Positions 46,018 to 63,622 of a stretch of 64,000 nt of DNA are shown here, piece after piece (position 1 is the first letter of the stretch; each line of letters opens with the position of its first letter). Both the position numbers and the translations under genes were made by a program. Under the pieces are notes generated by a model that saw only the letters and a program-made list of their open reading frames with translations, did no database searches and was not told the origin of the DNA. The stretch lies in the IMG/VR virus record IMGVR_UViG_3300046517_002304, positions 186,001 to 250,000 of that record; one strand, 5' to 3'.

Positions 46018-46550
46018 TACTTGTCCTTCCAAGGCATATCTTTAAATAACCCATATTCATCATCGTTGCCGCCCGTTGGCTCTTGTGGTGTTGATTTTTT
46101 TTGACTTTTATCCATAAATTGTTTAAATGAATAACCAGGAGGCAATTCATTTTTTGGTGGATAAGTGGCGATTACATTATCTCCATGCGCGCTAAAGCCA
46201 AACATTTGTTCGGTTCCGTGCTTAATTTTTTTGAGCACATTGAGCATATCTGATCTATTGATTGGCACTTCAATGAACAAATTGTCTCTAGCTATGTTTC
46301 CTCTAGACATTCTATCCATAAAATAATTAACAATATCCATTACGCCACTTTCTGCTCCGTCTATTTCAAAAATAAAGATGCCTCTTTTGTAGTTGGTCCT
46401 ATATAAGGCGAAAGCATTGACGTTTCCAGCGCCATCAAACGATACGACTCCAGTGTTAGTAGAAATTTTTTTCTCTAAAGCAGGCGTGTAGTTTCTAGAA
46501 ATATCAGCAATTTGGCTCAAGTTCCTGGGTGTAATATTTTGAATTGGCAT
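46017..46550 (-). CDS. Hypothetical protein
   Basis: 177 aa; TAAATA-N4-ATG; YSFKQFMD near the C-terminus. Confidence 0.6.
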   Translation of the reverse strand: MPIQNITPRNLSQIADISRNYTPALEKKISTNTGVVSFDGAGNVNAFALYRTNYKRGIFIFEIDGAESGVMDIVNYFMDRMSRGNIARDNLFIEVPINRSDMLNVLKKIKHGTEQMFGFSAHGDNVIATYPPKNELPPGYSFKQFMDKSQKKSTPQEPTGGNDDEYGLFKDMPWKDK

Positions 46551-46554
46551 GATA

Positions 46555-46560
46555 TATTTA
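46555..46560 (-). promoter_or_regulatory. Late-promoter-like TAAATA
   Basis: 4 nt before ATG 46550. Confidence 0.6.
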
Positions 46561-46561
46561 G

Positions 46562-46589
46562 TTGCATTTTTTTGTTTTTATGATATAAT
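46562..46589 (+). promoter_or_regulatory. Sigma70-type promoter for rtcB
   Basis: TTGCAT-N16-TATAAT with an extended TGn; GGAG at 46598-46601; ATG at 46609. Confidence 0.65.
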
Positions 46590-46608
46590 GCACGGTTGGA
46601 GAAAAATC

Positions 46609-47985
46609 ATGAATCCTAGACAACTAGAAAAAATCGGCATTACCCCGGACTGTATGTCTACTGCTATTGCTGGAATACAGAAGGCGGCAAAAGATGGCGT
46701 TCTTAGAACAATGAACGTTAAGGCCAAAATAAAGGGAATAGCAGATAACCCAGAATCTGGCGTGAATGATCTATATTTCGGGGATTTGGCTAAGGAAATT
46801 ATAAAAGATAAGAGTTTTGTCGCCAAAGAACCTGTTCCTTATTCTTATTGGGGAGTGGTGGACGAAAATGTAAAGGGTCAAATGCAAAACGTTTGCTCTG
46901 TTCCTAATGTGGAAAAAGTATCTTTAATGGCAGATAGTCATTATTGCACGCCGATACCCGTAGGAGCAGTCGTCGCTATGTCGGACGCCATTTCTCCATC
47001 TCTAGTAGGATCTGACATTTCATGTATGATGAAAATGTCTATCCTTGACATGCCCGTTTTGTCTATTAAAACCAAGCTTAATCTTTATAAAGAAGCGATT
47101 AATACCAGCACTAGGTTCGGAATGGGGCCTGAAGCATTGCACGATAAGCCGCAGCATCACCCTATAATGGACCAGCACTGGAGCATCACTAGAGTAACTA
47201 GAGAGATTAAAGATAGGGCATGGAAGCAATTAGGTAGTTCTGGTAACGGGAATCATTTTTGTGATATAGGAATAGTTACGCTAAATTCTAATGCATTTGG
47301 ATTAACTGCCGGCGAATATGTGGCTATTCTGTCTCACAGCGGTTCCAGAGGCCCTGGTGCGGCTGTATGCGATACTTATGACAGTATCGCTGGCAGAAAG
47401 CGACCTAGACGATATGATTACCTTGGGCGGCTGTCCTGGCTGGATAAAGGCACCCAAGAGTTTTATGAATACTGGGAAGCAATGAACTTCATGGGAGAAT
47501 ATGCATCTGCTAATCATGAAGTTATACATAGGTTGCTAGTAAAAAACATAGGAGCAAATGTCTTGTTCTCATTAGAAAATAAACATAATTTTGCTTGGCT
47601 AGAGGAAGTGGACGGCAAGGAAATGTACGTTCACAGAAAAGGAGCAACTCCCGCCGGAAATGGAGTTATGGGAATTATCCCTGGTTCTATGGCTTCGCCA
47701 GCGTTTGTGGTTTGCGGAAAGGGTAATAAAGAATCAATTAACTCTGCGTCTCATGGCGCAGGACGAGTAATGAGCCGTAGACAAGCTAATGAGAAGTTTA
47801 ATTGGAAATCTATTAAAGGTGATTTAGACAAAAAAGGTATAACCGTAATTGGTGCATCTGCCGAAGAAGCACCTTATGTGTATAAGGACATTGAGCAAGT
47901 TATGAAACAACAGGAAGACCTGGTAGATGTAGTGGCTCGTTTTGATCCAAAAATTGTTCGTATGGCAGAAGATGAAAGAAGATGA
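46609..47985 (+). CDS. rtcB: RtcB family RNA 3'-phosphate/2',3'-cyclic phosphate ligase
   Basis: MADSH, GSDISC, GNGNHF, SHSGSRG, HNFA, HRKGAT, IIPGSM, SHGAGR and EEAP..YKDI. Likely start MNPRQLE at 46609. Confidence 0.95.
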   Translation: MNPRQLEKIGITPDCMSTAIAGIQKAAKDGVLRTMNVKAKIKGIADNPESGVNDLYFGDLAKEIIKDKSFVAKEPVPYSYWGVVDENVKGQMQNVCSVPNVEKVSLMADSHYCTPIPVGAVVAMSDAISPSLVGSDISCMMKMSILDMPVLSIKTKLNLYKEAINTSTRFGMGPEALHDKPQHHPIMDQHWSITRVTREIKDRAWKQLGSSGNGNHFCDIGIVTLNSNAFGLTAGEYVAILSHSGSRGPGAAVCDTYDSIAGRKRPRRYDYLGRLSWLDKGTQEFYEYWEAMNFMGEYASANHEVIHRLLVKNIGANVLFSLENKHNFAWLEEVDGKEMYVHRKGATPAGNGVMGIIPGSMASPAFVVCGKGNKESINSASHGAGRVMSRRQANEKFNWKSIKGDLDKKGITVIGASAEEAPYVYKDIEQVMKQQEDLVDVVARFDPKIVRMAEDERR

Positions 47986-50097: not shown

Positions 50098-50982
50098 TTA
50101 GGATACATTAACCGGTTTATTATTGACAACCACTTTAGGCAAGGCGTCTAGTATGGCTTCTATAAGTTTAACCTGCCCATCGTCAACCTTTTCTAGGTAT
50201 ATGAATAAATCTGCTAAGTTTCTAGCATCTGGATGGTATGAGTATCTATTGGCCAGAAGGTGCTGTATGGCTTTTAGCATTTCATCTTCGGAATCGCCCA
50301 GTACATGCTTTGTGAGAGCAAAGTAATCTCTTTTAAATTGGGCTACTCTTACGCCAAATTCATGCGGCATTAAATAATATTTAACAGTATTTTTTTCATC
50401 TCTGTCAAGGTCTGAATTATCAATATCGGCATCAGTAAATTGTCTAATAAGTCGCTCTTTAAAAGTATTTTGGGCAGCGTGCGTTAGCTCGTGTGCCAGT
50501 GCTTCTTCTTCATCTTTTTTAGCAACTACGCAGAAAGGATTGCCGATTGCGTCGTTGGAGCAAAAGGCTACATTGCCCGTTAACTTACCCTTTAGCTCAT
50601 CTGGACTTACGTTTATAACTGGAACGTACTGCATCATTCTAATCTGGTTAAACACCATGCCGCTTTTGGCATCTGCGGGTTTTTGAGCCTTAACTGCATT
50701 GCTTATTGCACTATCAGTTTTATCACCATAAAAACCATGTATTACATCTAGTGGTTTATAAAAAGCAATTTGATCTGGGTTTAAATTATACCCATATGTT
50801 TTTTTAACATATTGAATTAAGTCGGCCTTTCTCTCAACTTCTGTTGCCTTATCAGGATGAATCCGAGATACCTTTGGCATTATACCCATCATGGCTGTGC
50901 CGATTACTAATGGACTTGCTATTTTACGAAGCCTGCTGTTCATAAGACCCTCAGTTTGAATTAGCCATTCTCTAAATCGCAT
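50098..50982 (-). CDS. Zincin-like (HExxH) metallopeptidase-domain protein with FREWL motif
   Basis: ALAHELTHAAQ (50479-50493) and downstream PHEF; N-terminus MRFREWLIQTE. Confidence 0.65.
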   Translation of the reverse strand: MRFREWLIQTEGLMNSRLRKIASPLVIGTAMMGIMPKVSRIHPDKATEVERKADLIQYVKKTYGYNLNPDQIAFYKPLDVIHGFYGDKTDSAISNAVKAQKPADAKSGMVFNQIRMMQYVPVINVSPDELKGKLTGNVAFCSNDAIGNPFCVVAKKDEEEALAHELTHAAQNTFKERLIRQFTDADIDNSDLDRDEKNTVKYYLMPHEFGVRVAQFKRDYFALTKHVLGDSEDEMLKAIQHLLANRYSYHPDARNLADLFIYLEKVDDGQVKLIEAILDALPKVVVNNKPVNVS

Positions 50983-53123: not shown

Positions 53124-54845
53124 TTATATTACTTTGCGGGTATACATCCATTCATATATCCTCTCAAAACACCAAGGCGCTTCTGGGAAGTTAATAGATA
53201 AATCAAGCCATTTTTGATATTGTTCTTTGGTATATTGCCTAATTGTATCTCTTCCTATAGCCATTATGGCCCCAGCCCCAAAGCACAACGTATCTGGTAA
53301 TTTATCGTCTGGAAACATGGTAGAAAGCAGCTCTTGTATTTTCAGACCATCATGGTTCGGCCTACCGTTTAAGTAACAGTCCAAGTTTACGTCGCACAAA
53401 TTAATAAAAGAAATATTGCGAGGTATCTTTATTATATTGCTCATAAATTTACGACAATGGGCCATTGTGTTGCCTTGACAAAAAATCGTAACATCAGACA
53501 AGTTATCGTAGTTTTCTATAATATGATGAAAGTAAGTATGGGCCTCTCTGCCGATATTAGGCAAAGCAATAGCAGGCGTTAGCTTACTTTCTGATTTATC
53601 ATACACTTTTTTCTTGCAGTTTAAATCGTGAAGCCAATCAATATCTTCTTTATATTTTGCCACCACAATTTCAATACCATCTAAGCTTTCATTAACTACA
53701 TAATATTCTTTAAAATCTGTAAATTGCTCATATTTTTTTTCCATGCTAGTTTTATTTTCGCTAGGATAAGTTCCTGTGGTATGGTAGCATATAAGAGAAA
53801 ATTTATCCTTGATAATAGCAGTATTACTAAACGTATTTGGAAGCCTGGCCCATCTTATCGGATATTTTGCTGACACCTTAAATAACTCTGATATATAATA
53901 CTGGTCATCATGTTCGGGATTTTGCTCCACGCGATCCAAAACATCGGCATAAAGCTTCTCTGTAATTTCGGAGCATCTCACCACCGCCAACCCTCCGTTT
54001 ACACAGTAATAATCACAGTGATCCGTTTCTTTCATAAAAAGAACGTCTTTATTTATCATAAGTTTTTGCACAATATCATAAAACGGACGAATCCATAAGA
54101 TATCGGAATCTGAAAATATTACTATTTTACCGTAATTATTTTTGATTAAATTTAAAGCTATCTTGGTTCTTTTGATTATAGTAGACATGTACCCATAACT
54201 ATTCCAATTTGCGTTTCCCGGTACCTCAACTGATATCGCCCCAACTCTAATGTTTGGATCGTTGGTAATCTTTAAAGAATTTAAAAATACAGAATGCTCC
54301 ATATCCTTATAATTTCCTGCGCCCACCGTGTATATGTTAATCGGCTCATTATACGGGATTAGCTTTTGGTGGTTTTTTGCAATATCTACCTTAACTGGAT
54401 TTTTTTCGTTTATCCATTCTGTAAAACATCTAGTATCTGATGTATCTAATAAACTAGATGATACCATAGTGCCGCTGAAGCCTCCGCCAGAACCCAAGCG
54501 AATTATTTCATGCTTAGAACACTCAAAAGACATTTTGGCTAGCATGTCCCGGCTGTTTAATAGGAAATCTTCGTCGATAAAACAGATATATTTTGAATAC
54601 AGCAAGTTACAGCATAGGTTCATAACGGAATTGATGCTGTTTATTTCAGCAAAATGAATCTCTACATCCGGAGATTTAAAATCATAAATGTACTTGATAT
54701 AATCAACATTTGAACCATTGTAAACTATTGCGATATACGGATTGTCGGATTGTAACCTTAACTCATTAACAATGCTGTCAATTTTTTTCTCATTTTGTAT
54801 GATTAAACATACGGTTATCGGATAATCCCAAGGATAAATTTTCAT
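53124..54845 (-). CDS. Multi-domain glycosyltransferase: GT-A-like + nucleotide-diphospho-sugar transferase + DUF3431-like
   Basis: IFSDSDILW (DxD), VNGG and DDQYY; C-terminal IVVAKYKEDIDW..NIGREAHTY..YDNL.DVTIFCQG. Confidence 0.75.
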   Translation of the reverse strand: MKIYPWDYPITVCLIIQNEKKIDSIVNELRLQSDNPYIAIVYNGSNVDYIKYIYDFKSPDVEIHFAEINSINSVMNLCCNLLYSKYICFIDEDFLLNSRDMLAKMSFECSKHEIIRLGSGGGFSGTMVSSSLLDTSDTRCFTEWINEKNPVKVDIAKNHQKLIPYNEPINIYTVGAGNYKDMEHSVFLNSLKITNDPNIRVGAISVEVPGNANWNSYGYMSTIIKRTKIALNLIKNNYGKIVIFSDSDILWIRPFYDIVQKLMINKDVLFMKETDHCDYYCVNGGLAVVRCSEITEKLYADVLDRVEQNPEHDDQYYISELFKVSAKYPIRWARLPNTFSNTAIIKDKFSLICYHTTGTYPSENKTSMEKKYEQFTDFKEYYVVNESLDGIEIVVAKYKEDIDWLHDLNCKKKVYDKSESKLTPAIALPNIGREAHTYFHHIIENYDNLSDVTIFCQGNTMAHCRKFMSNIIKIPRNISFINLCDVNLDCYLNGRPNHDGLKIQELLSTMFPDDKLPDTLCFGAGAIMAIGRDTIRQYTKEQYQKWLDLSINFPEAPWCFERIYEWMYTRKVI

Positions 54846-56221
54846 CTTTTTTTAATTTTTTGAAATTGTTCTAATTTTAACTCAACACTACTTTTATTTT
54901 TTACTGGGAATGTCCCTATTGAATGATAACAGATCAATCTATCGTCATTGATATCATACTCTAGCGAGCTATTGGCGAATACGCTTGGCAACATGCACCA
55001 TTTAAGATTGGACTTTGGCAGCAAAGTATTAACAATGCCCTGGAACCTTAAGTTTTTTTCCTTCAGCGAACAATATACTTTTTCGTAAAAATCATATATG
55101 TCCTTATAAAACTTTTCAGTTTTTTCCGAACACTTAATAACCGATATTCCTATATTGGCCTTATCCTCTGCCTCTTCGTTATTTGATTCTTTGGTGTACA
55201 GACAATCATAATTTTGCATCATTAAAAATTTAATCGTATGCGAAAACGGCTTGAACCAATAGATGTCCGCGTCAGAGAAGACTATGACTTTGCCATAATT
55301 TGATTTGATCAAGTTAATGATAATTTGCGTTTTATACAAATCCATGTCGGCAAATCCTTGGCTGGTAAAGTCACCATTACTATAATGATCTATAAATAAA
55401 GGCTTTAGCTCTATATCTGGATCATTAATTTCGTTCAATGACTTCATGTAAACATTATGATACAATTTCTCATGGGATTGAGAATACATGCAGAACATTT
55501 GTATTTTGCTATTATGATCCCACTGAGGCGATGTTGTATCGGCATAAGATAACATTAAATCAGAATCATGTTGCATCTTATCTTTATCGTCGTAAAACCC
55601 AAATACTTTGTCGCTCTTACTATAGCCTTCTTCTCCCAGTATAAATGGGCTAATTTTATTGTCTTTTAAATTCAAATTAAACATAACTTCCCTACTCAAG
55701 TAATCCTTAGATGCTCCAGTAGGCGCTTGATTCCGCAACCCTAATCTTTTACTTAGTTTTCTAAGATTAAAACTAATATTGTGCTTGGCGAATAAGTCTT
55801 TTTTTACCATAAGGCTTTTAAATCCCACCATTGACTTATGTCCTGGATAAGTTTTGTCAATTAAACTATATCCACATACGTTTTTTTTGCTGCATAATGA
55901 CATCATATATTCAAGAGAGCATGTCGCTTTTGGTAGACAGGTCATGTCTGTTATGTAAACATAATCTGATTTGCTTATACTAATAGCAAATTCTAATGCA
56001 CAAACAAATGCGTCAGATTGATTGATCTGATAGTTTGGCGATATCCATTGGACAATGATATTCTTGCTTTTAATTTCTTTTAAGTAATAAAAGTCCCCTA
56101 GCTTTTCTCCAGTATATAAGATAATAATATCAGGACGAATCGTTTGTAGTTCTAGCAAATTGACCAAATTAGCCACGCTTTGTCTTTGACTGGTGATAAT
56201 GCAGGCACTAATATTTGACAT
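54842..56221 (-). CDS. Glycosyltransferase: GT2-like N-terminus + nucleotide-diphospho-sugar transferase
   Basis: VFSDADIYW (DxD), ANIG and FQGIVN; C-terminal domain paralogous to the neighbouring gene. Confidence 0.72.
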   Translation of the reverse strand: MSNISACIITSQRQSVANLVNLLELQTIRPDIIILYTGEKLGDFYYLKEIKSKNIIVQWISPNYQINQSDAFVCALEFAISISKSDYVYITDMTCLPKATCSLEYMMSLCSKKNVCGYSLIDKTYPGHKSMVGFKSLMVKKDLFAKHNISFNLRKLSKRLGLRNQAPTGASKDYLSREVMFNLNLKDNKISPFILGEEGYSKSDKVFGFYDDKDKMQHDSDLMLSYADTTSPQWDHNSKIQMFCMYSQSHEKLYHNVYMKSLNEINDPDIELKPLFIDHYSNGDFTSQGFADMDLYKTQIIINLIKSNYGKVIVFSDADIYWFKPFSHTIKFLMMQNYDCLYTKESNNEEAEDKANIGISVIKCSEKTEKFYKDIYDFYEKVYCSLKEKNLRFQGIVNTLLPKSNLKWCMLPSVFANSSLEYDINDDRLICYHSIGTFPVKNKSSVELKLEQFQKIKKR

Positions 56222-56230
56222 ATATTTAAA

Positions 56231-56983
56231 TTAGTTATTGTTATGATAATATAAGCTAAAATTACCGTCATTATCTTCAATGATAGCAGAACAACTTTCA
56301 ACAAAATCGCCACAATTCATGTATTTAAACCCATTGATGTCTTTGATTTCAGCATGATGAATATGTCCGCATATAACTCCATCACATCCATTTTTAATGC
56401 CGTATGAGACAAGACAATCCTCAAAATCAGACATATAATTAACTGCGCTTTTTACATTATACTTGACCGCCTTGCTTAAAGACCACTTTTTAAATCTAAA
56501 TATCTGCCTTATTTTATTCACCAGGTGATTTAGCCTAAGTAAAAACTCATACCCTATGTCACCTAAAACACACAGCCACTTAGCGTGTTTTGTAACTAAA
56601 TCAAATGCATCGCCATGAATAACCATCATTTTTTTGCCGGCAGCGCTTTCGTGTATGACTTCGTTAGTAATTGTTATATTTCCAAAACTTAAAATATGAT
56701 ATTGATCGATAAATTTTCTAATAAACTCATCGTGGTTTCCAGCGATTAAATAAACCTTAGTGCCTCGTTTTATGAAGCCAAAAATCTTTCTAATAAGAAG
56801 CGTAGCGTTATCGTCCCAATACCAATTTCTTTTTAATTTCCATCCGTCAATAAAATCGCCAACGATATAGATAAATTCTGGCTCGTCCTTTTTGACGGAT
56901 GTTAAAAAATCAATTAGCTCTTTTGTGTGAGCATGCCTAGATCCAAGATGTATATCGCTAATAAATAGGCTACGTATTTTCAT
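56231..56983 (-). CDS. LpxH-like (UDP-2,3-diacylglucosamine hydrolase family) metallophosphoesterase
   Basis: SDIHLG, VGDFIDGW, GNHDE, HGDAFD, CGHIH and NCGDFVE. Confidence 0.88.
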   Translation of the reverse strand: MKIRSLFISDIHLGSRHAHTKELIDFLTSVKKDEPEFIYIVGDFIDGWKLKRNWYWDDNATLLIRKIFGFIKRGTKVYLIAGNHDEFIRKFIDQYHILSFGNITITNEVIHESAAGKKMMVIHGDAFDLVTKHAKWLCVLGDIGYEFLLRLNHLVNKIRQIFRFKKWSLSKAVKYNVKSAVNYMSDFEDCLVSYGIKNGCDGVICGHIHHAEIKDINGFKYMNCGDFVESCSAIIEDNDGNFSLYYHNNN

Positions 56984-58019
56984 TTACTATATTTATGACC
57001 TTTTGAACTCCATTTACCATTTTACTTTCTGATGGCTTAAAATTATTGACGAAATTAATAACCACTTTTTCATTTAACTTACTGGCGCTGCAACTTTGTC
57101 CAATCTTTAATTTGTCAACATAGAATGCATTTATATGCTGTTCATACTGGCCTGGTTCTGGAACAACCAGCATTGGTTTGTTGTAGAATCTAGCCTCTGT
57201 TATCAACTGATTACCTGCTGTAGATATTACACATTGACAATTTGCCAAGTCTTTGATAAAGAACGGAGACAAGCCATGAAAACTAAAGTTTTCTTTATCA
57301 AAGAAGTAGTTTTTGTTTTTGTTATCTATATGCCCATAAACATGGAGCGGTATATTTAGATTTCTAAGAGAATCAAGTATTATATCGCTTACGGTTCCAC
57401 GAAGATACACTAGGACAAAGCCTTTATTACTAGGGGTAATTTGGTCCATTCCCTTCCTTAGTAGACCGTATGTAAGCGAAACATTTGGATTGTTTGGAGT
57501 TAAGTTATCAAAGTTGAAAGTAGAAATAATAGTTTTATATGGATTGGGCACCATATACTCTACGGTAAGTTTCGCCATTCGGCAATATAGCTTTAAAAAG
57601 GCAGGAAGATCTGATAAATCGCAATCAAGAAAGCGATGCTGATTATCAACGGATATAAATTTTTTATTTAACAGATTGGCAACTCTCGGCATAGATGGCT
57701 CAAAATCCGTCATGAATAGGCATGGGTTTAATTCATCTGCTTTGGTCTTTATGTAATCTAAGTTCTTTTTAATCTCATGTTTAAAGAAATTATAAGTAGT
57801 TAATCCAGTCTTTAGATAATTAACGTGATTATGTCTGTAAGAAAACAAAATGCCGGCAATGTTATGTCTATTCTGGTATTTTATAGTTTTTAAAAATTCG
57901 TAAGCTTTGCCAAATGTAAAAATATGAAATTCATATTCTGGCATGTGCTCTACAACAGAGAGAGTTCTTGTGATATGACCTAGACCTTCGCCAGCAACAC
58001 CATAGAAGATTCTTTTCAT
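56970..58019 (-). CDS. MJ1255/VC2487-like GT-B glycosyltransferase
   Basis: IFYGVAGEGLGHITR, TDFEP, VDNQH, ISTAGNQLITEA and GQYEQHINA. Confidence 0.85.
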   Translation of the reverse strand: MKRIFYGVAGEGLGHITRTLSVVEHMPEYEFHIFTFGKAYEFLKTIKYQNRHNIAGILFSYRHNHVNYLKTGLTTYNFFKHEIKKNLDYIKTKADELNPCLFMTDFEPSMPRVANLLNKKFISVDNQHRFLDCDLSDLPAFLKLYCRMAKLTVEYMVPNPYKTIISTFNFDNLTPNNPNVSLTYGLLRKGMDQITPSNKGFVLVYLRGTVSDIILDSLRNLNIPLHVYGHIDNKNKNYFFDKENFSFHGLSPFFIKDLANCQCVISTAGNQLITEARFYNKPMLVVPEPGQYEQHINAFYVDKLKIGQSCSASKLNEKVVINFVNNFKPSESKMVNGVQKVINIVNENT

Positions 58020-58078: not shown

Positions 58079-60193
58079 TTAAACAGTTTGCGAAAGCTGA
58101 TAGGCCGTAAAGTTTTTATTTGCCGTTTTGTCTCTCGGTTCTAAAACAATTTTTGCGTGGATTTTCATCATCGGCTCTTGGAACTCTGGATCTTTTGTCC
58201 TTACCGATGTTTGAATTGCCTTTTTTAGAATTGGCATCATTTCAGATTCAAATTTAGAATTATACTCTACGCTTACATTATTATGTTCGTCCGAATGCAA
58301 TATCACCAATCCCTTTTCATCATATGCAACACCAACAGATATCTCGGATGCGGCGGCATATATGTCTTCGTTATCTGGCTCTGCCTCATATTTCCAACTT
58401 TCTTCTTCTTCCTCTTGTTTTAGTTGCTTAATCTTCCACTCAACATACTCATTATAATACTTTGTTTTTATTAGTTGCTCAAGGTCTTCATTTGAAATAT
58501 CATCTGGTACATCAAGCGATTCATCGCTAGCAAAATCATCCATGTCATATCCAATATCATTCATTACTTCTTCTTTATCTTCTCCGTAAGATTCCGATGG
58601 CTTAGATTCAACGTTTCCCTGAGCTTTCTCCATAGCAGCTTCATATGCGTCATCGTGTACTTCGTCAAAATCAACTATTTCATTTGAGATAAAATCTTCT
58701 TCATCTATGCTGTCGCCTCTGTAGGAAACGTATTTATCTGGTACGTCTTCCCATGTTTTCATGCCATCCTTAAGCACTAGGTATTTCCACGCAAGCTCGC
58801 CTATAATAAACTTATTGTTTTCGGTTTTTTGTCGCGCAGCTTCCTTTCTGTCTTCGTCTGCCTTAGTATGTTGGGCATGGGCATCATCTATATGAGCCAT
58901 TATTCTAGGATCAATCTGGAGATACTTAGAAAGCTCTTTTATGTTTGTTACAGCATGCTTTTCCAGTGGCTCGCCAGGATTCTCTAAATATGAATTTAGT
59001 TCTTGCGTATACTCTTGCTTAAATTTGTTAAATTGTGATGGAATAAGAGACTCTAGGGCGGCAGAGTGTTTAAAAATATTTATTGCATCGTAATAACTCT
59101 GTTCACGTATATTTTCTATAACATCATTTACGTTATCGTCTAAAAATTTGGCTATGTAAAAGATTACAGAGCCTCTATTGGTTTTGTCTGCCGCAGCCTT
59201 GTTCATAATATCATACAGATACTTGTTATCTTTACTAACAGCCCGAATAAAGAAATGTAGTATTTCATCATCGGCATAACTGGCTTTTATAAATTTACTT
59301 ACATCATTTAAAGGCACTCTGGTATTGGCTGGCTTAATGTCTAGAGCAGGATGCTTTCTCCCTCCAGAAACCGTTGTGCCGACACCATTGATTCTATGCA
59401 TTACCATTTCGTGTGCATTAGGATATCCTTTTAACATTGTATCTGCTAAAAACTTTAAGTAAGCTACATTATTGTTATATTCATTTTGCCATTTGTCTTT
59501 CGCCTCATGACCAGTTTTGCTATGGACGGTTTCTATAGTACGTCCACTCATCCTATCTCTAATTTCATAAAACTCCATTAAATCATTATCGATCAACGGT
59601 TTAGCAGCCTGCTTCATCATGTCAAGAACGCCATCAATAGCATGTTGCGGGTGTTCGTTTCTAAAAAAGTAAGACCAAGAACCAGATGCTTTTGATACAG
59701 AAATGCCAGTAGTGATTTTTTGTGCATTGGATGCGCCAGCCTTAATGTCTGGGACTGCCGAAACTTTATGCTGAGTGTCCTGCGCATTCTTAAACTTATT
59801 TAATAAATCCTGTTTTTCAGGTTCAAACTCATCGCTTTTAATGTTCTTAACAATATTAGACCAGTCTGATTCGCCTTCTTTATATGGAACCGGCTTACCG
59901 GCCTTAGATTGTAATAACGGCGCTAAAGTTTTGATAAAGCTAATGTCTACGCCTTTTCCTGCCTCAATAGGATTAGTTTTGGTAATGCCAACGTGTGTCG
60001 GCCTCTGACTTATAGAAACATATCCTACTCTTCTTGCTTGATACGGTGCAATAAAATAAGTAGACCATTCGGTATCCGTCTGATAGTTGAACTCTTTAAT
60101 GAAATGTGGCTCAACGACATGAAGAGTGGATTCGCCTATCCCATCTTGGATGACGATGCTTTCTGATAACAGGAGCCACTCTTTGAAATTCAT
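58079..60193 (-). CDS. Large hypothetical protein with FKEWL N-terminal motif and acidic C-terminal third
   Basis: 704 aa; MNFKEWLLLSE; TAAATA-N4-ATG. Confidence 0.65.
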   Translation of the reverse strand: MNFKEWLLLSESIVIQDGIGESTLHVVEPHFIKEFNYQTDTEWSTYFIAPYQARRVGYVSISQRPTHVGITKTNPIEAGKGVDISFIKTLAPLLQSKAGKPVPYKEGESDWSNIVKNIKSDEFEPEKQDLLNKFKNAQDTQHKVSAVPDIKAGASNAQKITTGISVSKASGSWSYFFRNEHPQHAIDGVLDMMKQAAKPLIDNDLMEFYEIRDRMSGRTIETVHSKTGHEAKDKWQNEYNNNVAYLKFLADTMLKGYPNAHEMVMHRINGVGTTVSGGRKHPALDIKPANTRVPLNDVSKFIKASYADDEILHFFIRAVSKDNKYLYDIMNKAAADKTNRGSVIFYIAKFLDDNVNDVIENIREQSYYDAINIFKHSAALESLIPSQFNKFKQEYTQELNSYLENPGEPLEKHAVTNIKELSKYLQIDPRIMAHIDDAHAQHTKADEDRKEAARQKTENNKFIIGELAWKYLVLKDGMKTWEDVPDKYVSYRGDSIDEEDFISNEIVDFDEVHDDAYEAAMEKAQGNVESKPSESYGEDKEEVMNDIGYDMDDFASDESLDVPDDISNEDLEQLIKTKYYNEYVEWKIKQLKQEEEEESWKYEAEPDNEDIYAAASEISVGVAYDEKGLVILHSDEHNNVSVEYNSKFESEMMPILKKAIQTSVRTKDPEFQEPMMKIHAKIVLEPRDKTANKNFTAYQLSQTV

Positions 60194-60231: not shown

Positions 60232-60239
60232 TATAAATA
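60232..60239 (+). promoter_or_regulatory. T4-type late promoter TATAAATA
   Basis: Exact consensus, 4 nt before ATG 60244. Confidence 0.75.
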
Positions 60240-60243
60240 CTAT

Positions 60244-61593
60244 ATGAACTTCAAGGTGTGGCTAGAAGCAATACTAGACCCAAATGTAAAATACTTAGGT
60301 AAATACCCTAACGATTACGGCGATAAAAAGCCACGCCTTGGTAGGGGAGCTTATCTTAAACTAGATACTAATGGTCGCGTCACATCCTTAACCCAAGACG
60401 ATTGGGAACGGGGCACTCCATATATACAAATACAGCCGAATCACTCAATATCTTTGCACAAGATAAGCCCTCAATCGCCTGATTTTGCTAAAATTATAAA
60501 AGCATTAAAGCCAAAGTTCCATGATATAGGAAATTGGCAAGTTGAGTATTTCTTTATGGCAAGCCATTTAGTAACCGGTAATGAAAAATATTATCGTACA
60601 GTAGATTACTGGCTTAAACATACTGTTAATATTAACGATACCTTGCCCGAATTCTTTTATCACGGAACATCCACCAATCAGTGGTATGAAGGCATTAAGA
60701 AAAATGGCTTACTACCAAGAAATATTACCGGATCTGCCGGAGGGTATGGTTCACAAAACGCAAGTTCTTTAAGCAAAAAAGGTATAGTTTATCTTTCTAC
60801 TCATCCCGACGCGGCCACAAGAACCGCAGCAGAACAGGCGGCAAACAAACATGGTGGAGTGCCGCTGATACTGAAAATCAATAGTTCTGGGATATTCAAG
60901 GATAAATTAGTACCAGATGAAGATTCAAGGCAACCAAATGCCCAAAAGTCAATCGTTAAAATGTCAACTGTAGGATATGAAGGGCGAGTACCTCCATCGG
61001 CCATAGAGCCATTTTTACTTGGTAATGAATATGAAAAAAATAGTCGGCTTTATACTAAATGGGAAAAATTTAAAGACGTTCCAGTTGCCGAACATCCATT
61101 AACCGCACGTTTAAAATCTGGAATGACGCCATACAGCAATGATCCAGAATACTATATTTTGAGGGATGCGGGAATTATTAAAAGAGAAAAAACAAGAAAC
61201 CCTACTAGTGGCTGGCCATCTGAAAACGACGTTCAAACTAGAGAAGTAAGCGACGAAGAGTTACGCAAATTACTTAAAAATGGTGGGTGGGCAAACACTG
61301 CTAGGGCGATTAGTACTGATTTAAACAATGGCTATCAAGGATGCATATACAGCTTAAAAGACATCACCCTGCCGCCTAACATGTCGCCAGAATCGGAAAG
61401 TATAATTAAGATGCTAACTGACAGTAGGCTATGCGGCACTGATACTCGGGGCGAAAAGAGGTATATCTATTTAAACAACTACGATTCAATGGATAGGGTA
61501 ATTGCCTTAGCTAAACTTCTACATGCTAAAAAGATGGACATGGACGATCTATGCCGAGAAATAAAAACTATTACGGCGTTGCCATTAGACTGA
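60244..61593 (+). CDS. ADP-ribosyltransferase/Tpt1-fold domain protein with FKVWLE motif
   Basis: FYHGTS..IKKNGLLP..VYLST..A..A..LILKI..VPPSAI. Confidence 0.7.
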   Translation: MNFKVWLEAILDPNVKYLGKYPNDYGDKKPRLGRGAYLKLDTNGRVTSLTQDDWERGTPYIQIQPNHSISLHKISPQSPDFAKIIKALKPKFHDIGNWQVEYFFMASHLVTGNEKYYRTVDYWLKHTVNINDTLPEFFYHGTSTNQWYEGIKKNGLLPRNITGSAGGYGSQNASSLSKKGIVYLSTHPDAATRTAAEQAANKHGGVPLILKINSSGIFKDKLVPDEDSRQPNAQKSIVKMSTVGYEGRVPPSAIEPFLLGNEYEKNSRLYTKWEKFKDVPVAEHPLTARLKSGMTPYSNDPEYYILRDAGIIKREKTRNPTSGWPSENDVQTREVSDEELRKLLKNGGWANTARAISTDLNNGYQGCIYSLKDITLPPNMSPESESIIKMLTDSRLCGTDTRGEKRYIYLNNYDSMDRVIALAKLLHAKKMDMDDLCREIKTITALPLD

Positions 61594-62115
61594 CATTAAG
61601 TGAGTTCTTTGAATCTGCTTGCCTACCCCGCCTGGCGGAGGTAATGGCGAAGGTGGATTCCTATCATCATCGCCGCCATTATCGTTATCATGGCCATTAT
61701 AAAAGCCATAAATAGCATTCTCAATAAAATGCACAACTTGCGCCGGCGATTTCAATGGAGTTTGAGGATGTAAATTGTCTGCTATGGAATGAGATAAATT
61801 ATCTCTCTGCATTCTTAGATTTACGAAAAACTTAAGGAACTTATTACCAGTAGCGTGGTCATATTGTAAATTATCCACATCATCGCCAGCGGCCTTATCA
61901 ACCACAACATCTACAGTGGCAAGAAATACGTCATTCTTATGAATACCTCTTCCAGTAAAAGATAGGCGATTATGAAAGCTATATTTTGGATCAAAGTTTA
62001 CTTCTTTCCAATCCATAGTCCAATTACCGGCTATATGTTTGGAAAAAGCTTGCTTAAAATCATTGGCTAAATTAGATAATGATTGGCTATGCTCAACAAA
62101 TAGTTTAAACTTCAT
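61585..62115 (-). CDS. Hypothetical protein with FKLFVE motif
   Basis: MKFKLFVE; TAAATA-N4-ATG; D/G/P-rich tail. Confidence 0.6.
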   Translation of the reverse strand: MKFKLFVEHSQSLSNLANDFKQAFSKHIAGNWTMDWKEVNFDPKYSFHNRLSFTGRGIHKNDVFLATVDVVVDKAAGDDVDNLQYDHATGNKFLKFFVNLRMQRDNLSHSIADNLHPQTPLKSPAQVVHFIENAIYGFYNGHDNDNGGDDDRNPPSPLPPPGGVGKQIQRTHLMSV

Positions 62116-62119
62116 ATAC

Positions 62120-62125
62120 TATTTA
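62120..62125 (-). promoter_or_regulatory. Late-promoter-like TAAATA
   Basis: 4 nt before ATG 62115. Confidence 0.6.
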
Positions 62126-62129
62126 GAAG

Positions 62130-62381
62130 TTAATATCCGTAATCTTCGGAATAATCGCCGTCCATAGGATCAATTATAACGTCAGCATCATAGGCCCACT
62201 TAGATAATAGCCTAGATACTTCTTCATAATTCCAGAAGCAGCTTACCATAATTGGACTTTCTTCCCCACAGCTCGGGCCAAATGATCTAATAATGCTTAT
62301 AATTTCACTATCCCATTCACCGGAGGTCCATCTAATATGATAATCGTAAAGTCCAACTCCGCTGAAGTCAAATAGTTTCAT
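62130..62381 (-). CDS. Small acidic hypothetical protein
   Basis: 83-aa ORF. Confidence 0.5.
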   Translation of the reverse strand: MKLFDFSGVGLYDYHIRWTSGEWDSEIISIIRSFGPSCGEESPIMVSCFWNYEEVSRLLSKWAYDADVIIDPMDGDYSEDYGY

Positions 62382-62422
62382 CTGGTAAATCTCTTATTAA
62401 AAATCCACTAATATATATTAGT

Positions 62423-63622
62423 ATGCGATTTTCTCAATTCTTGACAGAAATTAGGACTCCTCCACATATGCCTCTGAAGTATTTCAGAGATAAGCTGGCC
62501 AGCATTTCTGCTATAGAGCAAAATCTGAGTGAATTTGTTTTAAACTATGAAAAATTTCAAGATATTTTATATGATTTCAATGGTACTTCCAACTATTACA
62601 GAATCCGCTTACCATGGGAAATTGGAGAAAAATTAGGCAAAAATACATCATATAAAGATTCATTTTCAGAGCCGATAAGAAGACTATTTCAATATTTAGA
62701 GTTTGATAATCCTCACGGTTGGGAAAAATTTCTGCCAAACATTCTTCCGTTCGGAGAAGAAGGATATCAAGCTTTTATTACAAAGCATCAAAAGACATTG
62801 AGGAAAATGACTCAATTTATAAAAGCTGCGCCTGATTTAGTTAATGAAATAAAAAGTGTTGCTGAATATTTGCAGGGTGGAAATCAAGCCGAGCCAGGAG
62901 CGCCGACTTTAGCAGAGGCAGTAGGGTACGTGAATTACATTGCCAATGGATATCAAAATATAATGAAGTTGCTAAAAGAAGTTTTTGATCTTGAACATAA
63001 ATTAAAAGCGTATATGGAAAGAATACAACTTAATAAAGAGAGACAGTGGAACAGCACCGGAGAAGATATCAAGCCGAAACACGAAGGCACAGAAACATTA
63101 TATCATGCTACAATTGCCGCAGATGCTATTATAAACGGCGGATTTAAAACAAGAGCAGAATTAGGCCATAACGGAGCCTTAGGTGGTGGGCCGAGTGATG
63201 TAGTAAGTTTTACCGCCGACCTAAGAATAGCTAAAGAAATAAGCAAGAACCTAAGAATTGTAGTCAGAATAGCCAAAGGATTAATTAAACCAGAAGAAAT
63301 ACTAAAAATGGCCGCAGACGATAATGTTGACATTAGTAGATTTGACGCTCCCCGTAGTTATGCTCGCCATAAGACAGATGATCCAAAGATGACCTATGAG
63401 TTATTCAGAAGCTTTTTAGCACAGGCACATTTTGATAACAAGCATTATGACCCGTTATTCTTCGACGTATCTTTAGATGATTTGAAAAATGTAGATGAAC
63501 GACAAATTGGCGTACTAGCTTGTAAGGTTGATATGAGCCAAGTGAAAGATTATCTCACATCTATGGAAGAGTATAGAGCGCCGCCTAGTGCAGTTTTAGG
63601 TGTTAGAAAGGCTATAGGATAA
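62423..63622 (+). CDS. Protein with C-terminal ADP-ribosyltransferase-fold domain and FSQFLTE motif
   Basis: TLYHAT..IINGGFK..VVSFTADLRIAK..MEEYRAPPSAV; TATATA 5 nt upstream. Confidence 0.6.
   Translation: MRFSQFLTEIRTPPHMPLKYFRDKLASISAIEQNLSEFVLNYEKFQDILYDFNGTSNYYRIRLPWEIGEKLGKNTSYKDSFSEPIRRLFQYLEFDNPHGWEKFLPNILPFGEEGYQAFITKHQKTLRKMTQFIKAAPDLVNEIKSVAEYLQGGNQAEPGAPTLAEAVGYVNYIANGYQNIMKLLKEVFDLEHKLKAYMERIQLNKERQWNSTGEDIKPKHEGTETLYHATIAADAIINGGFKTRAELGHNGALGGGPSDVVSFTADLRIAKEISKNLRIVVRIAKGLIKPEEILKMAADDNVDISRFDAPRSYARHKTDDPKMTYELFRSFLAQAHFDNKHYDPLFFDVSLDDLKNVDERQIGVLACKVDMSQVKDYLTSMEEYRAPPSAVLGVRKAIG

Follow-up and report, generated by a model that had tools for sequence, protein, structure and literature searches.

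What two neighbouring genes of an uncultured 511-kb soil phage encode, and at which stage of infection their products act, is the question raised by the locus described here. Gene A (positions 60244-61593, 449 amino acids) and gene B (62423-63622, 399 amino acids) lie on the plus strand of a 64,000-nucleotide stretch, hereafter the window, that comprises bases 186001-250000 of the 511,233-bp virus record IMGVR_UViG_3300046517_002304; positions below are those of the window unless given as genome positions. The record has direct terminal repeats and is rated complete. The region recurs in six or more metagenome runs (soil, rhizosphere and root) from separate samples, and it is therefore not an artefact of a single assembly. 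A sequence-only reading of the window had proposed that A and B are divergent, injected, NAD+-dependent effectors of the ADP-ribosyltransferase (ART) fold that share an N-terminal tag and a late-type promoter. In our analysis, A and B appear as two unrelated-looking members of the ART superfamily in a phage with a T4-type head, and we put the probability at roughly 0.55 that both are made late, packaged by means of the tag and injected to modify macromolecules with host NAD+.

Both open reading frames (ORFs) are present as that reading had placed them, with the strings that it quoted (FFYHGTS, IVYLST and RVPPSAI in A; LYHAT, VSFTAD and EEYRAPPSAV in B). Gene A, encoding a tagged KptA-like protein of ART fold, is delimited by the ORF list, its homologs and a structural model. 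Seventeen homologs were recovered, all metagenomic and 45 to 50% identical. The AlphaFold2 (AF2) model built on the family alignment (predicted local distance difference test score [pLDDT], 81; predicted template modelling score [pTM], 0.77) shows, behind a tag, MNFKVWLE (60244-60267), that may serve as a capsid-targeting propeptide and is predicted to be cut after E8, a beta-rich domain (residues ~34-125; 60343-60618) that ends near the invariant R118; an ART domain (residues 129-278; 60628-61077) defined by Foldseek, hhalign and conservation; and two C-terminal alpha/beta modules (residues ~285-449; 61096-61590) drawn from model secondary structure. The last module is helix-rich with a beta hairpin in the model and may be winged-helix-like; residues 415-443 gave only a sub-threshold match to a RecQ-1-like helix-turn-helix. 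The motifs of the ART domain are H140-G-T142, R159, Y183, K202-H203-G-G205 and D225-E226-D227, and the residues invariant in the 17 family sequences are H140-G141-T142, R159, Y183, D189, G204-G205, D225-E226-D227 and P256.

Fold searches with A were dominated by ART families. Among the 50 top Foldseek matches in the PDB, 49 were ARTs, with KptA/Tpt1 first, followed by the pertussis and cholera toxins and DarT1; nearly all matches returned by VIA-align were likewise ARTs, and Tpt1/KptA again ranked first. Among AFDB clusters, the matches were DarT (DUF4433), RNA 2'-phosphotransferase, DUF3990, ArtA, pierisin-like, and DUF7587 proteins, down to E = 2e-5. Against BFVD, A matched six Bacillus phage G proteins (gp233, gp53, gp532, gp336, gp251 and gp568) and, further, PaBG KptA, PBS1, DarT, Arr, and an uncharacterised 368-amino-acid protein of the T4-like Vibrio phage nt-1; the matches in phage G and other jumbo phages are at the level of fold only. 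Sequence searches were far less informative: neither single sequences nor the A-family profile found anything useful among the sequences of solved structures, scans of A, B and their neighbours against Pfam, PHROGs and PADLOC returned no ART family at threshold, and the sole family-scan match for A was phrog_13493 (unknown function; residues 138-268). The modelled protein has the split beta-sheet, NAD+-binding core of the superfamily, so that on the model the proposed ART fold of A is confirmed, with an NAD+ lobe of predicted KptA type.

The kinship with Tpt1/KptA is concentrated in this lobe. In hhalign, the A family aligned with the phage's own KptA at E = 6e-5 and 32% identity over 68 columns (Y-H-G-T-S on Y-H-G-T-S, G-L-L on G-L-L, V-Y-L-S on V-H-L-S and K-H-G-G on R-H-G-G), pairing H140 with the His of HGT and Y183 with the His of V-H-L-S. 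The NAD+ contacts of Tpt1 are made by the His and Thr of H-G-T and by an R-H pair/arch (PMC6333775). Of these features, A has the invariant H140-G-T142 and, aligned to R-H-G-G, K202-H203-G204-G205. Because A shares the contact residues, binding of NAD+ in the KptA manner is the natural reading of the alignment. The two proteins have in common the motifs Y-H-G-T, G-L-x-P-R, V-[HY]-L-S and [KR]-H-G-G-x-P and a V-P-x-x-x-[IL] end, and both are without a catalytic Glu on beta5. Unlike KptA, A has Tyr in place of the second His, an 18-residue insert after R159, a helix insert with the invariant D-E-D ahead of beta5, an extra N-terminal domain, two extra C-terminal modules and the N-terminal tag, and it has neither the winged-helix RNA lobe nor the Arg-His dyad.

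Given these matches, A might be a Tpt1/KptA paralog for RNA repair that works with RtcB on cleaved tRNAs. Tpt1/KptA enzymes are its best structural matches, PF01885 gives weak matches in A and in 3 of its 17 relatives (best E among the relatives, 0.021), and the window also encodes an RtcB RNA ligase (46549-47985, plus strand; E = 2e-76). However, the PF01885 score of A is 11.5 bits (E = 0.062) against a gathering cut-off of 26, the NAD+ lobe alone aligns, and the essential Tpt1 tetrad with its Arg-His dyad is missing from A: in the 17-sequence family alignment, the first 125 residues hold no conserved Arg-His dyad or winged-helix RNA lobe. R159 may be the counterpart of the fourth Tpt1 Arg. 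In addition, A carries a tag and about 300 extra residues, with about 170 further residues at its C terminus, and a canonical KptA/Tpt1 that retains L-R-H-N-P and the other tetrad residues is already encoded elsewhere in the genome (genome 387869-388351, minus strand; PF01885 E = 1.5e-41; best PDB relative, 7kw8). On these grounds we rejected A as the Tpt1 of this phage, and we hold a role in RNA repair to be very improbable. The canonical KptA and RtcB form an RNA-repair pair separate from A.

In Aravind's scheme, the active-site residues of A read H-Y-x and come nearest to the H-H-h clade. At the beta5 position, E246, the family varies (E, T, S, N, Q, R, A or K), and the invariant P-D-E-D follows beta4 in a loop matching the ADP-ribosylating turn-turn (ARTT) loop. 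By its position in the alignment, D-E-D in this beta4-beta5 loop could supply the catalytic acid instead; spatial claims on D-E-D, R118 and R159 rest on topology and alignments. DarT (DUF4433) models were among the best AFDB matches of A; this likeness is at the level of fold only (E = 1e-4 for the DUF4433 model), and PF14487 (DarT) matched nothing in the whole genome. Considering the Glu-less, KptA-type site, the KptA and DarT neighbours in fold space and the possible winged-helix-like C-terminal module, a nucleic-acid phosphate or other nucleic-acid group is the most likely acceptor for A, in the simplest case a phosphate at a terminus, as in the 5'-end ADP-ribosylation carried out by Tpt1-type enzymes (PMC12678800).

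Gene B encodes a tagged protein with a helical N-terminal domain and a C-terminal ART-like domain. Its tag, MRFSQFLTE (62423-62449), has a predicted cut after E9 and is followed, at residues 13-210 (62459-63052), by a PPHMP motif and, in the model, a sequence-variable helical bundle; the ART-like catalytic domain occupies residues 218-399 (63074-63619), as delimited by conservation, ESM Atlas matches and profile matches. Twelve close relatives, about 28% identical, were found, and in 8 of the 12, as in many wider homologs, the protein begins M-x-F-x-x-[FW]-[LI]-E and continues with a conserved PPH[ML]P. Public calls of the B gene begin at Met16 and so lose the tag (P0018 has 384 amino acids, and the Atlas entry runs from residue 16). 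Since homologs keep both the tag and P-P-H-M-P, the longer ORF, starting at 62423, is the real one.

The C-terminal domain of B belongs to a very large family. Among 1.84 billion representatives, a profile built from it matched at least 1,235 clusters with E no higher than 1e-3, and 813 with E no higher than 1e-10. Across 53 diverse sequences of the domain, which are about 30 to 40% identical, H228, G240, G254, P344, E383 and R385 are invariant, and E224, S262, F263, T264, D266 and E382 are conserved in at least 90%. The layout places H228 on beta1, S262-F263-T264 on beta2, a helical insert at 267-337, E382-E383-Y-R385 on beta5 and P-P-S-A-V at the end. The candidate catalytic EE noted from the sequence thus holds up, with E383 invariant and E382 nearly so. 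As for the strands said to be kept by both proteins, the His and Ser/Thr strands are conserved in both families, whereas the exact PPSA[IV] string is particular to this phage; behind it stands a family consensus, [RK]-[IV]-P-x-x-x-[IL], comparable to V-P-x-x-Y-[IL] in KptA and V-P-A-A-Y-L in the phage's own KptA.

The evidence on the fold of B is good but indirect. In the AF2 model (pLDDT, 70), the C-terminal domain comprises a strand at 223-230 ending in Y-H-A-T, a helix, a strand at 261-264 (V-S-F-T), a helical insert and four strands at 363-396, the third of which starts with E383; this order fits beta1(H)-alpha-beta2(SFT)-alpha...beta3-beta6. When the full model was compared with the PDB and AFDB clusters by Foldseek and VIA, only helical-bundle matches to residues 13-210 were returned, swamping the C-terminal domain, and the N-terminal domain matched generic bundles only (TrbJ-like proteins, designed bundles and DH domains). 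For residues 212-399 in the ESM Atlas, the ten best named feature matches all belonged to the ART clan (0.90 to 0.93), from the families Pertussis_S1/Scabin, NarE, DUF7587 and Enterotoxin_a, and the shape matches were mostly ARTs as well (Pertussis_S1, Scabin, DRAT, DUF7587, PARP and DUF952), at modest TM scores of 0.35 to 0.50. Residues 191-399 of the AF2 model superposed on a PARP cluster in the Atlas over 105 amino acids at 3.4 Å and on an ADPrib_exo_Tox cluster over 109 amino acids at 4.3 Å. Searched against PDB sequences, B-domain profiles gave weak matches (E ~0.2), of which 27 of 30 and 28 of 40 were tankyrase catalytic domains.

These tankyrase alignments set E-x-L-Y-H-A-T...G-F of B on R-M-L-F-H-G-S...G-F, and I-S-F on I-Y-F; in tankyrase, these two strands bear the His and the Tyr of the H-Y-E triad. 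In hhalign, the Y-H-A-T strand of B fell on Y-H-G-T of A (E = 5.6e-4) and on that of KptA (E = 0.004), both at low probability. One B relative, P0146, carries a NUDIX domain (520-636) fused to the B domain (833-1026), and in others, including P0066, P0081 and P0116, the domain sits inside proteins of 1.4 to 4.7 thousand amino acids with PBECR5 nuclease and GNAT domains. On the Atlas matches, the tankyrase alignments, the invariant H228 and E383, the NUDIX fusion and the polyvalent context, the C-terminal domain of B is very probably an ART. The active-site elements of the superfamily (His or Arg on beta1, Tyr or Ser-x-Ser on beta2, and Glu, Asp or Gln on beta5) are all present in B, and A has them in a KptA-like form.

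The two proteins look like different kinds of ART. The Tpt1/KptA layout that had been suggested for both fits A and does not fit B, in which PF01885 matched nothing and which looks more like the H-Y-E (PARP-like) group with Ser for Tyr. B resembles PARP and tankyrase in its L-Y-H-A-T...G-F and I-S-F-T strands, which align with L-F-H-G-S...G-F and G-I-Y-F, and in the invariant Glu that follows; its E-E-Y-R-V also recalls the PARP strand N-E-Y-I-V. It departs from PARP in having Ser262 at the position of the triad Tyr, a helical insert of about 70 residues that separates beta2 from beta3 and, two residues past the Glu, an invariant Arg. PARP/H-Y-E membership is not supported by family models: the 53 B members gave no significant Pfam match and none to PF00644. 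The invariant Glu suggests that B is a classical mono-ART acting on proteins or nucleobases, and its variable helical N-terminal domain is a candidate target-recognition or packaging module.

We also considered whether A and B act on small molecules, as NADases or NAD+ phosphorylases or by modifying antibiotics or immune signals derived from NAD+, and are delivered to blunt NAD+-based defence. The H-H-h clade, to which A is closest, includes enzymes of RNA repair, small-molecule modification and soluble ADP-ribose production (PMC9503650); Arr-type proteins occur among the matches of A, and the NUDIX fusion of one B relative joins the domain to a processor of ADP-ribose derivatives. Against this, both proteins have large extra domains, as expected for the recognition of macromolecular targets, and the strongest named matches of A, KptA and DarT, act on nucleic acids. 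These points are not decisive, and we regard a small-molecule substrate as rather unlikely.

Relative to known phage ARTs, A and B stand apart. Phage ARTs are often head-associated, and jumbo myoviruses are rich in them (PMC9503650); the literature lists at least 10 in Bacillus phage G and finds ARTs in more than 40% of jumbo phages. T4 Alt enters the prohead core; after trimming by the gp21 protease, it is ejected along with the DNA (PMC9026906). The comparison with T4 Alt drawn in the sequence-only reading is apt as an analogy of a head-packaged ART, in that A and B, like Alt, are phage ARTs presumably expressed together with the head genes, and a packaged lifestyle is proposed for them; it does not extend to family membership. 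PF03496 (T4 Alt/ADPrib_exo_Tox, the R-S-E clade) had no match in the whole genome, and both proteins have His, not Arg, on beta1. A polyvalent architecture, with ART domains that include MuF-fused ones, has been described for injected phage effectors (Iyer, Burroughs, Anantharaman and Aravind; PMC9503650). The B domain is like polyvalent ARTs in being embedded in the very long PBECR5/GNAT proteins noted above, a hallmark of predicted injected multi-effectors; B itself, in contrast, stands alone behind a short tag and is fused neither to MuF nor to a polyvalent chain. PF18760 (ART-PolyVal) matched neither the A family nor the 53 B members. By these profile comparisons, A and B lie outside the Alt, PARP, DarT, ART-PolyVal and Tpt1 families of Pfam. 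Among 50,697 deposited phage genomes, tblastn found no relative of A or of B, and megablast of the region against the same records gave no match.

How would such enzymes reach the host? Both carry the tag, as the sequence-only reading had said (MNFKVWLE in A and MRFSQFLTE in B), and the tag recurs across the genome. Its consensus is M-x-F-x-x-[WFY]-[LIVM], then hydrophobic-x-Glu. A six-frame translation of the 511-kb genome contains the pattern M[NRKDQ]F..[FWY][LIVM] 25 times; in 20 of these cases its Met is the initial ATG of an ORF with 50 or more amino acids, against 0.46 expected from composition. In 18 of the 20 tagged ORFs, a Glu stands at residue 8-13, nearly always with a hydrophobic residue two positions earlier; one has Gln. 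Among ORFs of at least 100 amino acids, Glu at residues 8-13 is found in 16 of 17 tagged versus 166 of 570 untagged (p = 5.6e-8). Predicted cut sites include LIE|A, LTE|M, VSE|S, LNE|D, ITE|A, FLE|S, WLE|A (in A) and LTE|I (in B). Homologs of the A family retain M-x-F-K-x-W-L followed by E-A. Codons at the conserved positions vary, with both Phe codons in use and nine different codons at position 7, so that selection acts at the level of the peptide rather than the DNA, and a DNA-level motif was ruled out. A Sec signal peptide was set aside as well, the tag being in our judgement too short and too acidic.

The phage head is of T4 type, as judged from a gp21-like prohead protease (Peptidase_S77, E = 1.4e-25; genome 164128-164814, minus strand) and a major capsid protein of the Gp23 family (E = 4.8e-87) found in a family scan of the genome. 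The closest deposited relative of the capsid protein is in a 595-kb uncultured phage (LR756511.1; 60.7% identity), and the next are T4-like cyanophages and coliphages at about 30% identity. For T4 IPIII, the N-terminal 10 residues are enough for head incorporation (PMC9026906), residues 4 and 7 serving targeting and residues 8 and 10 processing (PMC9026906, PMC3012670); gp21 cleaves after L/I-x-E (PMC9026906), and the internal proteins are otherwise unrelated and fast-evolving (PMC9026906, PMC3012670). The tag has the features of such a capsid-targeting sequence (CTS), being a short peptide on unrelated proteins that ends in hydrophobic-x-Glu in a genome with a gp21 homolog. Like the CTS of IPI, IPII and IPIII, which it resembles rather than the propeptides of Alt, it has spaced aromatic or hydrophobic residues before a hydrophobic-x-Glu site and sits on otherwise unrelated, fast-evolving proteins, and the phage encodes a protease of gp21 type and a capsid of gp23 type. 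It differs from the T4 CTS in its consensus and the Glu at 8-13, in a targeting function that is putative, and in occurring on about 20 proteins of up to 704 amino acids, several of them of enzyme fold; the phage is also three times as large as T4. Since both a gp21 homolog and a gp23 capsid are encoded in the genome, the simplest reading of the tag, by analogy, is a lineage-specific capsid-targeting propeptide.

In one relative, an A homolog lies near head genes. On a contig of SRR28493914, the A homolog P0009 lies 1.4 kb downstream of, and on the same strand as, a module of Portal_T4, S77 protease and Gp23. The order on this contig (1-11323) is Portal_T4 (with a weak intein match), S77 protease, a 325-amino-acid gene, Gp23 and then the A homolog; a TnsA-like/DUF7487 gene lies between the capsid gene and the A homolog. 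We infer packaging and injection from three features, namely a tag that resembles a CTS, protease and capsid genes of T4 type, and this A homolog beside a head module.

The late-type promoter box claimed for both genes is exact for A only. Upstream of A, an exact T4-late-type box, TATAAATA (60232-60239, plus strand), ends 4 nt before the ATG; B has instead TATATA (62412-62417, plus strand), a one-mismatch variant of TAAATA that lies 5 nt before the ATG, at -11, and is not the consensus. TAAATA at exactly -10 to -5 from the ATG was found at 26 of 587 ORFs of at least 100 amino acids, and at five or fewer at any neighbouring offset; ORFs with the box at -10 include some of 2580, 1645 and 1028 amino acids. 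Tagged genes are enriched for it (8 of 17, versus 36 of 570 others; p = 7.7e-6). TATATA is also enriched at -10/-11, at 11 ORFs, more weakly than TAAATA. Within the window, TAAATA sites lie at 60234-60239 and upstream of 60193 (minus strand), 62115 (minus), 50982 (minus), 37982 (plus) and 46550 (minus). With T4-like spacing, transcription from such a box would begin at or beside the start codon, and a TAAATA box so close to the ATG (4 nt) hints at late mRNAs with little or no leader.

This spacing bears on a different account, in which A and B are unpackaged, late cytoplasmic enzymes of the producing cell, where they might modify phage DNA or proteins or turn off host functions late, and the N-terminal motif serves initiation, stability or localisation. 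The first codons could be constrained by initiation on a leaderless transcript, the packaging of A and B is only inferred, and T4 itself has non-packaged ARTs, ModA and ModB (PMC9503650). Yet codons at the conserved tag residues vary freely, the Glu after the motif in 18 of 20 cases, nearly all hydrophobic-x-Glu, matches the gp21 recognition pattern, and box and tag are separable, since the box precedes no more than 8 of the 17 tagged genes and most genes that have it are untagged. We therefore consider cytoplasmic action in the producing cell unlikely.

The reading that we prefer is late synthesis, packaging by the tag and injection. The genes for A and B would be expressed late; the tag would carry both proteins into the prohead core; and the gp21-type protease would remove it after E8 in A and E9 in B. 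Mature A and B would then be packaged alongside the DNA and accompany it into the host, where they would ADP-ribosylate host, and possibly phage, macromolecules with host NAD+ as soon as infection begins. Two further tagged proteins also resemble effectors, namely a third ART-like protein and a RelA/SpoT-like protein, both described below.

Packaging could also have a structural purpose, with one or both proteins serving as catalytically dead, ART-fold internal-head components (core, inner-body or scaffold-like). A has no conserved Glu on beta5, T4 prohead-core proteins are likewise processed by gp21 (PMC9026906), and most tagged proteins, which range from 56 to 704 amino acids, have no recognisable enzyme domain. 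On the other side, the NAD+-site residues are the most conserved ones (H140, G141, T142, R159, Y183, H203, G204 and G205 in A; H228, E383 and R385 in B), KptA works without the Glu, and relatives of B are fused to NUDIX or occur in multi-enzyme polyvalent proteins, which points to an enzyme. A dead-enzyme role is in our view distinctly unlikely.

Several observations weigh against injected ARTs expressed from late promoters. The major capsid gene has no TAAATA at -10, which leaves the late-promoter reading unproven. A, with neither a conserved beta5 Glu nor the Tpt1 Arg-His dyad, matches no characterised mechanism, and the sequence links of B to known ARTs are not significant alone (E = 0.2; hhalign probability, 3 to 30%). 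In none of seven loci on five other contigs do A and B homologs occur within 10 kb of each other, so that the cluster is specific to this phage. Finally, distant B relatives have other N termini, either short ones with hydrophobic-x-Glu or none resembling a tag; such differences are expected if addresses are lineage-specific.

A more specific version of injection is that A is a virion-delivered, KptA-derived enzyme that caps nucleic-acid phosphate ends, within a set of about 20 injected proteins marked by the tag. Bacterial and mammalian Tpt1 enzymes ADP-ribosylate 5'-phosphates (PMC12678800). We offer this as speculation and hold it to be improbable. If true, A would shield the termini of the injected linear genome from exonucleases or end-sensing defences, or act on host RNAs, and the tag set, comprising three ARTs, a RelA/SpoT-like enzyme and many proteins without assignment, would be readable straight from the genome sequence of a huge phage.

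A and B are surrounded by further tagged genes. Divergent from A is a 704-amino-acid ORF (58079-60193, minus strand; MNFKEWLLLSE...), and between A and B lies a 176-amino-acid ORF (61585-62115, minus strand; MKFKLFVEH...); both have TAAATA at -10, and neither had a match in Pfam, PHROGs or PADLOC. A tagged ORF of 294 amino acids (50098-50982, minus strand; MRFREWLIQTE...) likewise has TAAATA at -10 and no family match. An untagged, small acidic ORF of 83 amino acids (62130-62381, minus strand; weak match to phrog_19681, E = 0.004) is divergent from B and could conceivably be a putative inhibitor or chaperone of B. Past the window end by 274 nt, a 150-amino-acid ORF (genome 250274-250726, minus strand) begins M-Q-S-F-S-L-W-L-E, an offset variant of the tag, and has TAAATA at -10; counting it, the tagged cluster has at least five genes between 244 and 251 kb.

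Elsewhere in the genome, a third tagged ART-like protein of 275 amino acids (genome 68778-69605, minus strand) lies within a run of six tagged ORFs (genome 67.6-71.8 kb). It contains V-V-Y-H-G-T-S, I-F-F-T-F-S-S, E-P-D-V-D-D and R-D-I-P-P-K-Y-I, with P-D-x-D-D at the same place as P-D-E-D in A. It matched the A family in hhalign at E = 0.0026, and its matches to PARP (E = 2.7e-5) and to ART-PolyVal PF18760 (15.8 bits) were both sub-threshold. A tagged 180-amino-acid protein (genome 490246-490788, minus strand; TAAATA at -10) has a RelA_SpoT domain above the Pfam cut-off (31.6 bits) and is a candidate packaged effector of alarmone-synthetase-like or toxSAS-like type. Tandem tagged paralogs of 477 and 468 amino acids (genome 153771-156607, plus strand; phrog_20946, unknown function) adjoin a Gp23-like fragment with two internal stop codons (genome 153450-153632, minus strand), some 5 kb away from the genuine genes for capsid and protease.

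Two other blocks were noted in the window. Just upstream of the tagged cluster lie four consecutive ORFs (53124-58019, minus strand), and two of the four, when scanned, were of glycosyltransferase type (Nucleotid_trans and DUF3431 at 53124-54845; Glyco_trans_1_3 at 56970-58019); the block may have a role in DNA or virion glycosylation. A tail and baseplate block (11119-35336, minus strand) encodes PKD-domain proteins, Tail_P2_I and a Phage_base_V spike OB domain, and its 1040-amino-acid ORF lies in a local peak of GC content (0.45 at 32-34 kb).

Head-packaged enzymes are a phage's first move in the cell and, to our knowledge, are known from few phages other than T4 and a handful of jumbo phages. 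Head-associated ARTs of jumbo myoviruses and the Alt and internal-protein strategy of T4 were already established; new here are both families, the KptA NAD+ lobe on a new scaffold, the very large unannotated family of B, and a tag, readable from sequence, that groups A and B with about 18 other candidate virion-delivered proteins. Together with the T4-type head genes, the tag points to about 20 candidate injected proteins in this uncultured 511-kb soil phage, and A, B and the third ART-like protein represent families outside Pfam, PHROGs and deposited phage genomes. Annotation of the B domain as an ART would label a large unannotated block of viral sequence, of at least 1,235 clusters, that recurs in polyvalent effectors. 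As for A, it indicates that the NAD+ lobe of an RNA-repair enzyme can move onto new domains, which makes nucleic-acid ADP-ribosylation by injected phage proteins a concrete hypothesis.

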